From Auanema rhodensis (lineage: Eukaryota > Animalia > Nematoda), in assembly GCA_964057225.1 (NCBI GenBank), contig OZ059895.1:14632001-14696000 (forward strand): a DNA stretch of 64,000 nucleotides, read 5' to 3'. A program made the position numbers and the translations under genes. The notes beneath the pieces are model-generated. The model made no database searches, had not been told where the DNA came from, and was given only the letters and a program-made list of their open reading frames with translations. Positions within the stretch are counted from its first letter, which is position 1. Each line of letters begins with the position of its first letter. Shown piece by piece: positions 32,701-35,176 of this stretch.

Positions 32701-35176
32701 CAGGTTGTAGTTCAAACTCTGGGTAAGAGTGAGCAAACTGTTGTTGAGGTGAGCGTGCTGGAAACAACATCTAAGAATGAGAAACAAAAAAGGGGATATT
32801 TAATGATGTTCGCGCGCATATCTCTTGAAACATACCGTCATTACTTGCTTGATAATCTGGAATAAAGCAACAACCGCAAAATTTAAAGCATTTCAAAAAC
32901 TGCATTAGAAGGTAATTATAAATTGATTGCCTATTGATAAGGACAACCGTGTGCTGTGAATCAAGGAGAAGAAATAAAAAGGTATGAAACTGTATGCTTG
33001 GAAAATTATTAAAAAATCATTACCTTCCACATTATTACCGAAAGTCTGAGTTTGAGACTTTTTGAAAGCTAATTTAGGAATCTGTTCTTCATATGGGGTA
33101 GTATTCTCCACATCTCTGAAAAGTTGATTTTAAGCAAAGGAAAAAGCGGGAATCATACAAATGGGATTGATTTTTTATATTGATCGATGAGGACTTAGCA
33201 AAGGCTTCATCAAAACTATTTTCATCTCCATCATCAATCTCGCTATCAGAATACTTAGCAAGAATTTCACTACTACATGAAGATTCATATCTGTGGCGGG
33301 GAGCGTCACACCAGTCGGAGTATTTCGAGCCATTTGCAGACATAGTGAAATCAATGTTGTTTCGAACAGCTGGAGTGGGTGACACAGAGAATGACATAGA
33401 ACGAGCATTATCATTATCAGGAGTGGGAGCTGCAGGATGAGAATGGGCTTCATGAAAACTATTTTCATCTCCATCATCAATCTCGTTATCAGAATACTTA
33501 GCAAGAATTTCACTACTACATGAAGATTCATATCTGTGGCGGGGAACGTCACACCATTCGGAGTATCTCGAGCCATTTGCAGACATAGTGTTGTTTCGAA
33601 CAGCTGGAGTGGCTGACACAGAGAATGACATAGAACGAGCATTATCATTATCTGGAGTGGGAGCTGCAGGATGAGAATGGGCTTCATCAAAACTATTTTC
33701 ATCTCCATCATCAATCTCGCTATCAGAATACTTAACAAGAATTTCACTACTACATGAAGATTCATATCTGTGGCGGGGATCGTCACACCAGTCGGAGTAT
33801 CTCGAGCCATTTTCAGTCTTAGTGTTGTTTCGAACAGCTGGAGTGGCTGACACAGAAAATGAAGTAGAAGTAAAGATTACAGGTGCATTTATAGAGCACA
33901 CAACTGTTTCTGACTCCTCCTTCTTAGTTATCAAGCGAGCATTATCATTATCTGGCGTGGGAGCTGCTTTATTAAGAGTCTCAAGTTCGTCAAAGAGCAT
34001 TTGGCGAAGAGCTTCACATTCTCGAACAGCATTATCCGATAACTCTCCAACTTCTGCAGGTTCAATACCAGATTCTGGTTCAATAAGTAGATCAGAAATA
34101 GGAATATCACTGATTACACTAGGATGAGAATGGGTAGAATAGAATGATGACACTGTAGAATGGGAAAGATCCTCACGGGAATTTAATAATCCGTGGAGAG
34201 GCTCTGAAGACTCGGTTTCGTCGGCTGTAACGTTAGGAGGGTAGGGTAGCAGTTCGTCATTGGATTGTTTTGAATCAACAGATTGAGATTTACGAACAGC
34301 TGAAGGCCTAGGTAGTATTTGTTTCTGCTCGTCGAAACGGCTAGGAGAAAGCCATTTACAAAGCAGAGCAACAAACATAACTAACGACACAAAAACACCA
34401 AATTGTTCATGGAAATCAATTGAAGAGCCTAGCCTAGGACAATGACAATGAGCGCAATAGAATAAGAGAAACAGAACAGTGAACAGCTGACGTTTGTCGT
34501 CGACGCAAATGCGAATCGTCAGCGGTCAAGGCATACAAGTTGAATGATTGGATTGCTACTACAACCGATAGATAGATATCTCTATCAAATTGAAAGCAAG
34601 GAGTTGAATAGAATAATGTCTAATCAATAAAGATAAAGATAAAGATAATGATGATGATGGTGATGGGTAGTGGTGGCAGTATTCTCGCCTTGGCCACTCG
34701 AAACGTTCAGGCGTGCAGAACAAATAGGAAAAAAATGTATCTGCTTCAAGTAGAAAGTATAGACTTGTCAATCCGGCTAGTACTACGACATTGTGTACAT
34801 TTCAAGTACCAACAACTAAACATAAAGACAAAAGCAAGACAATCTAAAGAGCAATTCATGATGGTTCTGATATACACTTTAGATTAACTTTGGCAAAACT
34901 AATTGCCCGTAGGCAGACATCTGATAAGGAATAGCAACAAAAGATGTATGGGTACTATTATAGATGTAACTTACTCATAATCAATAGAAGTATTTAGTTC
35001 CTGGCTTTCATTATTTTTCTCTTGACCATTTTGTTGAGGTGGTAGTTTTGGCTTGGCTGGTACCTGGAGATGTTGATTAAACAAAACATAAATATAATCA
35101 AGCGCACCTTCTTCTTATTGTTTTTTCTCTTCTTCTTCTTTTGTAAGGCCAACACTTTCTTTTCCTCTCCACCCAT
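29784..35176 (-). CDS. spk-1: SR protein kinase (SRPK) with split kinase domain
   Basis: [86 protein letters not shown]. Lys-rich first exon [18 protein letters not shown]. Confidence 0.95.
33203..33970 (-). repeat. Three near-identical coding tandem repeats (periods 243 and 234 nt) inside the large spk-1 exon
   Basis: Unit [24 protein letters not shown]..[44 protein letters not shown]. The anchor ggcttcat recurs at 33203, 33446 and 33680. Confidence 0.95.

Follow-up and report, generated by a model that had tools for sequence, protein, structure and literature searches.

SR-protein kinases (SRPKs) are regulated mainly through their location in the cell, which is set by their non-catalytic N-termini and spacers. 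We analysed a window of 64,000 nucleotides (nt) from the nematode Auanema rhodensis (contig OZ059895.1, positions 14,632,001 to 14,696,000; all coordinates below count from the first letter of this window), whose minus strand carries what is, to judge from its sequence, the nematode SR-protein kinase gene spk-1, with a giant open exon inside its intron 2. Two described systems resemble this arrangement. In human, SRPK1a is an alternatively spliced SRPK1 with an N-terminal insertion of 171 amino acids (aa) (Nikolakaki et al. 2001, in PMC6624410); as at the locus described here, it is a minor SRPK isoform that carries, ahead of its kinase domain, an in-frame insertion of otherwise-intronic sequence (PMC6624410). 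The insertion in the nematode gene is however 2.4 times longer, acidic and repeat-bearing, shows no sequence similarity to that of SRPK1a (a full HMMER search with the exon returned no vertebrate protein) and apparently comes from an internal start, whereas SRPK1a arises by intron retention. In Drosophila, alternative promoters of the SRPK79D groups RB/RE and RC/RF give N-termini that carry targeting information (PMC2759580). Of the two systems, this one comes nearest to the mechanism that we propose, with alternative transcription and translation starts that place different, non-conserved N-termini on the same kinase. The N-termini themselves are however unrelated in sequence, and active-zone targeting has been demonstrated in the fly, whereas the exon described here is known from sequence and RNA contigs.

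A preliminary description of this DNA, made from the sequence alone, had presented the open stretch as a cassette exon that could yield a membrane-tethered kinase. We propose, with moderate confidence, that it is a genuine, lineage-conserved and fast-evolving optional coding exon, used as an alternative 5' exon: its transcription would start at a promoter within intron 2, and splicing would join it to exon 3. Most mRNAs skip it and encode a kinase of 707 aa. The exon-bearing RNAs (about 3-17% by contig depth) would start inside intron 2, downstream of GATA-type blocks, and would possibly be trans-spliced to the spliced leader SL1 at the acceptor 34433; translation from a conserved ATG at 34378 and in-frame joining to exon 3, through a conserved weak donor at 33159 and an intron of 43 nt, would give an isoform of 1061 aa. 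Ahead of the kinase, some 406-425 extra residues would begin with a hydrophobic helix of 22 residues and continue as a disordered arm, acidic and rich in Ser, in which a recent triplication affected the last 78-aa module. The elements concerned are the following (a slash marks a splice boundary; L001 is a contig of a second nematode and X1, X2 and X14 are RNA-like contig sets, all described below).

34975-35063, minus strand: exon 2, with a phase-2 end (TATGA/gtaagt); the joint 33115<->34975 is present in X1, X2 and X14
33159-34433, minus strand: giant optional exon in its best model, 1275 nt or 425 codons, based on the open frame, the L001 ortholog, and RNA contigs over 33827-34525 and parts of the repeat
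33116-33158, minus strand: putative intron between the giant exon and exon 3, 43 nt (45 nt in L001), with conserved GTATGATT...ttcag; the joint itself is unobserved
33024-33115, minus strand: exon 3, common to both forms, based on RNA-like contig joints and on a break of the main X14 contig exactly at 33115

The stretch from 34433 to 33195 (1239 nt or 413 codons, cctag/G to GCTAA/gtcctc) stays open in the reading frame that runs from exon 2 into exon 3. The full stop-free frame covers 478 codons (34525-33092), an event with a chance probability of about 2e-12, or about 1e-8 after two repeat copies are discounted, and the other two frames of the same strand hold 11 and 79 stops; the open frame is therefore not a product of chance. 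The phase-2 end of exon 2 at 34975 and the start of exon 3 at 33115, both given in the preliminary description, are borne out by the sequence and by the joint that skips the giant exon. The acceptor (cctag/G) likewise lies where it had been placed, at 34433, and scores 3.8 bits, inside the range of the true acceptors of spk-1. An in-frame stop stands upstream of it, at 34528-34526. An alternative upstream acceptor, at 34558 or 34555, was considered and rejected, being out of frame and without RNA coverage.

The exon had been described as a frame-keeping unit of 1239 nt ending at the donor 33195; its openness, frame, optional use and acceptor stand, and its 3' end has to be moved. Both species have a phase-2 donor TT/GTATGATT (TT/GTATGA), at 33159 in the window, followed after 43 or 45 nt by ttcag/AGATGT, and the DNA alignment with L001 resumes exactly at this donor, for which reasons we place the exon end there. 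The donor at 33195 (AA/GTCCTC) has no counterpart in L001. The giant exon thus probably ends 36 nt downstream of 33195, as far as the sequences of the two species indicate, and its length of 1275 nt is still a multiple of three.

This comparison was made possible by a HMMER search of 1.84 billion representative proteins, which returned one true relative of the exon, P0001 (E 2e-6), an open reading frame (ORF) called on the 2369-nt contig L001. L001 contains in succession exon 1, exon 2 with its phase-2 end, an intron, the orthologous open exon and, after a short intron, exon 3, and it is by its sequence the spk-1 of another nematode. The orthologous exon (L001 707-1966) measures 1260 nt, a multiple of three like the 1275 nt here, and its acceptor AG falls at the same codon position. 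Both exons start with the motif LGSxIDxHEQ..V...LVMFVAL..KW and share an ECEAxRQ.L.DE helix motif, a SxSVxATP...GSRxSD...SSCS module and an acidic tail, with an overall identity of only 28% and synonymous sites that look saturated. Their bodies have grown differently. The last 78-aa module, single in L001, occurs in three copies here, in the following repeat, which had gone unremarked in the preliminary description.

33203-33869, minus strand: in-frame tandem repeat of 234 nt (78 codons), 2.8 copies with 93% identity, encoding 78-aa units with acidic C-terminal clusters

L001 has for its part a duplicated (D/E)xx(V/I)KECEAIRQ helix motif (L001 1100-1160 and 1530-1590). With the helix motif doubled in one lineage and the C-terminal acidic module tripled in the other, this sequence comparison indicates that the same disordered arm expanded twice independently, in frame each time. 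Two single-letter differences between the RNA-like contigs and the window, at 33653 (T>A in X14) and 33735 (A>G in X1 and X2), both fall inside the tandem repeat; RNA editing was rejected as their cause, repeat-copy mixing or strain variants being the simplest explanation.

The other searches added no relative. Another HMMER match, P0002, was rejected as an unrelated repeat protein, and when the exon, its alignment with the L001 counterpart or the 40 conserved residues at the N-terminus served as query, word-index protein searches gave nothing beyond P0001. The expected ortholog of the gene in Caenorhabditis elegans is spk-1 (B0464.5). No C. elegans protein was found at E 0.001 in the HMMER search, which would miss a relative sharing only the N-terminal motif of about 27 residues, and a literature search found no description of the isoform structure of C. 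elegans spk-1. We take C. elegans SPK-1 to be about 1003 aa long, some 300 aa above the 707-aa skip form and roughly the contribution expected of this exon with a single unit in place of the triplication. Such a length would agree with an annotated long form, and we presume that N-terminal isoforms are probably already annotated in that species.

Transcription of the exon was followed in the small contig sets of one study. The RNA-like sets hold 0.54-0.77 of the sampled words, and the nine best of twelve DNA-like sets hold 0.92-0.95. Three RNA-like sets (X1, X2 and X14) and a DNA-like control (X5) were mapped on 29700-35300. The 15 joints listed for X1, X2 and X14 are all CT..AC, that is GT..AG on the gene strand, and X5 shows none, so the three sets behave as RNA. 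The skip joint 34975>33115, which had been put forward as a check, is present in X1, X2 and X14 at depths of 136, 415 and 169 and is the dominant form in all three. The giant exon lies on separate contigs with depths of 12.2, 14.3 and 33.7, or 3-17% of those of the main contigs. These exon contigs do not stop at the acceptor 34433 and extend 5, 80 and 92 nt beyond it in the three runs, to 34438, 34513 and 34525. Contig depth is zero across 34562-34935, the rest of intron 2, so the coverage upstream of the acceptor is not that of a whole unspliced intron.

34434-34525, minus strand: RNA-covered stretch upstream of the acceptor, in RNA-like contigs of three runs

The joint from exon 2 to the giant exon (34975>34433), another check named at the outset for cassette splicing, is carried by no contig in X1, X2 or X14. 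On exon 2 and around the acceptor, the listed contigs account for the bin depths to rounding (in X14, 93.9 x 187 = 168.8 x 104 and 27.2 x 187 = 33.7 x 151), so no contig with this junction is hidden there. Position 33115 is the exact end of the main X14 contig, which has 1021 nt and a depth of 200.5; exon 3 is thus entered by another route in addition to the skip joint. The 168.8 of the contig with exons 1-2 and the skip joint and the 33.7 of the exon contig add up to about 200.5. The contig ends and depths of X14 thus suggest that exon-bearing RNAs enter exon 3 and continue beyond it, without exons 1-2. No loose contig ends were reported for the RNA-like runs, and exact-product look-ups of partial ORFs, aimed at junction-bearing contigs, found none on record.

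Upstream of the exon, three colinear blocks are conserved with L001 in an otherwise unalignable intron, all of them within 270 nt of the acceptor.

34623-34699, minus strand: two colinear conserved non-coding blocks of intron 2, GAGTGG..GGCGAGAAT and TTTATCTTTATC, from a blastn comparison of the window with L001
34471-34493, minus strand: conserved non-coding block ACGTCAGCTGTTC, with a cAMP-response-element (CRE) half-site and a CAGCTG E-box, 38-60 nt upstream of the acceptor and RNA-covered
34376-34378, minus strand: first in-frame ATG, encoding the Met of the conserved MFVAL(L/F)xKW; probable start of the 1061-aa isoform

The two blocks at 34623-34699 include two GATA-type TTATC cores and are a candidate internal promoter or enhancer. 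The third block, ACGTCAGCTGTTC, is not coding, since it stands at different distances from the acceptor in the window and in L001, and the difference is not divisible by three. The RNA contigs begin between the second block (TTTATCTTTATC) and the third. Taken together, the three blocks look like an internal promoter, and because the exon-bearing RNAs appear to begin inside intron 2, downstream of the GATA-type blocks, such a promoter would drive them. P0001 starts at the Met that matches 34378, in the middle of the hydrophobic run.

Several points weigh against the proposed model. The joint between the giant exon and exon 3 (33159 or 33195 > 33115) is not among the 15 listed joints, in a region where the tandem repeat fragments every assembly, the DNA one included; six joints exist beyond the 15 listed, of which two are accounted for (the intron between exons 1 and 2, and an intron of 42 nt in the spacer). 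The evidence consists of assembled contigs with one depth each, a format in which rare variants are lost and which gives neither true 5' ends nor strand or local depth. The depth balance in X14 could reflect a 5' coverage bias, and the run kind 'RNA' is an automated guess, backed by the spliced joints. In a splice-site matrix made from the 17 introns of the gene, both candidate donors are weak, with scores of 1.4 and 1.7 bits for a gene range of 1.4-8.2, and the matrix does not separate them. The search yielded a single orthologous locus. Ahead of the candidate start, an upstream ORF of 9 codons opens at an out-of-frame ATG (34410), so that translation of an internal transcript would be awkward; this ATG overlaps the conserved His-Glu codons, which accounts for its own conservation. 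Finally, in the 18 codons between acceptor and candidate ATG, 11 of the 18 residues are identical to those of L001, and 6 of the 13 changed codons are synonymous. The differences fall 4/3/11 on the first, second and third codon positions (chi-square p about 0.04), a third-position bias which argues that this short stretch is translated and favours inclusion as a cassette.

The reading favoured by this last point is a true cassette exon with its donor at 33159, in which exon 2 is spliced to 34433, inclusion and skipping are regulated, and the RNA upstream of 34433 is unspliced precursor. Several features agree with it: the frame symmetry in both species (1275 and 1260 nt), the common codon position of the acceptor AG, the strength of this acceptor within the range of the gene, and the fact that protein-level conservation starts sharply there, the 60 nt just upstream being identical to L001 at only 18 of 60 positions. 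The cassette form would also have a clean ORF, as opposed to the upstream ATG of an internal transcript. We nevertheless regard it as unlikely to be the main origin of the exon-bearing RNAs, since a cis-spliced branch should break the exon contigs at 34433 and the exon 2 contig at 34975, whereas the former cross 34433 unbroken. Furthermore, a contig joining exon 2 to the giant exon is missing from all three runs, the depth arithmetic excludes additional contigs on exon 2 and at the acceptor, and with zero depth over 34562-34935 the upstream coverage is not plain unspliced precursor. The two lines of evidence may be reconciled if the single acceptor 34433 serves both for cis-splicing from the upstream exons and for SL1 trans-splicing of internal-promoter RNAs, a common arrangement in nematodes; a spliced leader of 22 nt would be clipped from contigs as a tip. 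Because the codons between acceptor and ATG look selected, a cis-spliced form probably exists at low level or in other stages. Its predicted length is 1132 aa with the donor at 33159 (1120 aa with the donor at 33195).

A nested gene in intron 2, or a kinase-less product made when internal-promoter transcripts read through the weak donor to a stop at 33089-33091, as had also been raised, would instead give an acidic protein of 429 aa. A mechanical ORF does run from 34378 to this stop, the ORF caller made the same read-through in L001 to produce P0001, both candidate donors are weak, and no joint from the exon to exon 3 was observed. Between the species, however, the read-through tails are unrelated, whereas conservation extends to the phase-2 donor and to the intron of 43 or 45 nt. 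The exon is a multiple of three in both species, a property that a nested gene does not need, and the X14 contig that begins at 33115 keeps a mean depth of 200.5 over 1021 nt of downstream exons, which fits RNAs that continue through the kinase. We consider this explanation improbable. Still more improbable is a non-functional, repeat-bearing intronic stretch that is open by accident and covered by background transcription, for although a third of the stretch is a young tandem repeat, no Pfam family reaches the cutoff, relatives are almost absent and the predicted structure is disordered, a frame open by chance has a probability of about 1e-8 or less, an orthologous open exon shares motifs and splice sites (with synonymous sites that look saturated), and RNA depth is confined to the exon with none in the rest of the intron.

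Returning to an alternative 5' exon spliced to exon 3, the protein that it would add has a hydrophobic opening and an acidic Ser-rich body, both recognised in the preliminary description and confirmed here. The body holds 74 Asp and Glu and 91 Ser and Thr (21% Ser+Thr), with a net charge of -40 over 425 residues, and a Pfam scan of the exon gave only sub-threshold chance matches. An AlphaFold model built from the two-row alignment, which supports statements on disorder and helices only, has a mean predicted local distance difference test (pLDDT) score of 35 over the exon and shows helices only at exon residues 7-28 and 133-156; in this model, the acidic Ser-rich body is a disordered arm in front of the kinase. 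Acidic clusters such as those of the repeat fit the CK2 consensus.

34349-34402, minus strand: hydrophobic run with a Kyte-Doolittle 19-mer mean of 2.09, inside the AlphaFold helix at exon residues 7-28, the only one predicted with confidence (pLDDT 80-86)
33965-34036, minus strand: second predicted helix, exon residues 133-156, with the conserved ECEA(L/I)RQ.L.DE motif

The membrane tethering that had been attached to the hydrophobic run is poorly borne out. In the window, the run exceeds the Kyte-Doolittle cut-off. For the predicted helix of 22 residues, a rough summed insertion cost is +0.9 and thus borderline. Asp, Ser and Lys occur in the corresponding segment of the ortholog, VDVLAWLVMFVALFSKWFA, which has a Kyte-Doolittle mean of 1.78 (versus 2.09) and a rough cost of +4.0. 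The helix of the cassette form is preceded by 63 residues with 14 Lys/Arg among them, and such a basic head would be hard to translocate in the topology that keeps the kinase cytosolic; in the internal form, a start at the ATG 34378 cuts the helix in half. A true transmembrane tether is thus unlikely in our opinion, and by analogy with other SRPKs the extra N-terminus most likely changes the partners or the localisation of the kinase and not its membrane anchoring. A more speculative picture, to which we attach little weight, would have the helix hold part of the kinase pool at a membrane (endoplasmic reticulum or nuclear envelope) or on a hydrophobic partner, the CK2-type modules, triplicated in this species, act as a phospho-regulated pseudo-substrate or docking arm, and promoter choice rather than splicing set the location of the kinase. 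The autoregulation by SR proteins and the acid autoinhibition suggested earlier are speculation.

The remainder of the gene conforms to an SRPK. Two single exons match SRPK1/SRPK2 chains in a PDB search (E 1e-19 to 1e-23), Sky1p matches are weaker (E 1e-11 to 1e-15) and DYRK and CLK come far lower. The spliced model of the skip isoform (707 aa, ending at 29784) has a bipartite kinase domain, in which about 170 residues of spacer, Lys-rich and acidic, separate the N-lobe from the C-lobe. The other 17 coding exons measure 64-214 nt each, in agreement with the earlier statement that they are typically under 250 nt, and 12 of the 17 introns are 42-48 nt long.

35108-35176, minus strand: spk-1 coding exon 1, with the ATG at 35176, based on sequence and on the orthologous exon at L001 154-222
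29784-32757, minus strand: remaining 15 coding exons, which encode the kinase domain and spacer, based on contig joints, the gene model and PDB matches

At the 5' end of the gene, the contigs of X2 and X14 end near 35204 by depth arithmetic, beside a gatttcag/CT acceptor 26 nt upstream of the ATG, and a second tttcag lies 16 nt downstream of this acceptor (region 35186-35210, minus strand). The main spk-1 mRNA is probably trans-spliced at the gatttcag/CT acceptor, and its 5' untranslated region probably starts at 35202, behind a tttcag acceptor.

Inside the exon that encodes the spacer, an intron of 42 nt (30939-30980, minus strand; TCT/gtattt...gaaag/AAC) excises an in-frame TAG. It is not among the listed joints and was deduced because contig record positions and bin depth both fall short by 42 nt; a 20-nt GT..AG intron in the same exon was rejected, the contig arithmetic fitting the 42-nt intron 30980-30939. 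The 471-nt spacer intron is partly covered by extra, shallower contigs (31061-31339 in X14 and X2, and 31310-31463 in X14, minus strand), and the main X14 contig breaks at 31559. The extra contigs suggest alternative processing in the SRPK spacer, either a retained intron or an added exon, which makes it a candidate for the kind of processing known for the spacer exon of the fly SRPK79D. A casein kinase I gene (27007-28750, plus strand) lies on the opposite strand, convergent on the 3' end of spk-1, and fits a kin-19-like neighbour.

These results would leave the general understanding of SRPKs as it is, since both human and fly are known to have N-terminal isoforms, and the class of mechanism proposed here is already known for these kinases. 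If it is true, spk-1 would have a second promoter and the kinase an acidic, fast-evolving N-terminal arm of 400 residues with a conserved hydrophobic helix. The gene would then offer a way to approach SRPK functions specific to a tissue or compartment, in a group that is amenable to genetics, and a worked example of a disordered regulatory arm that grows by in-frame tandem duplication.

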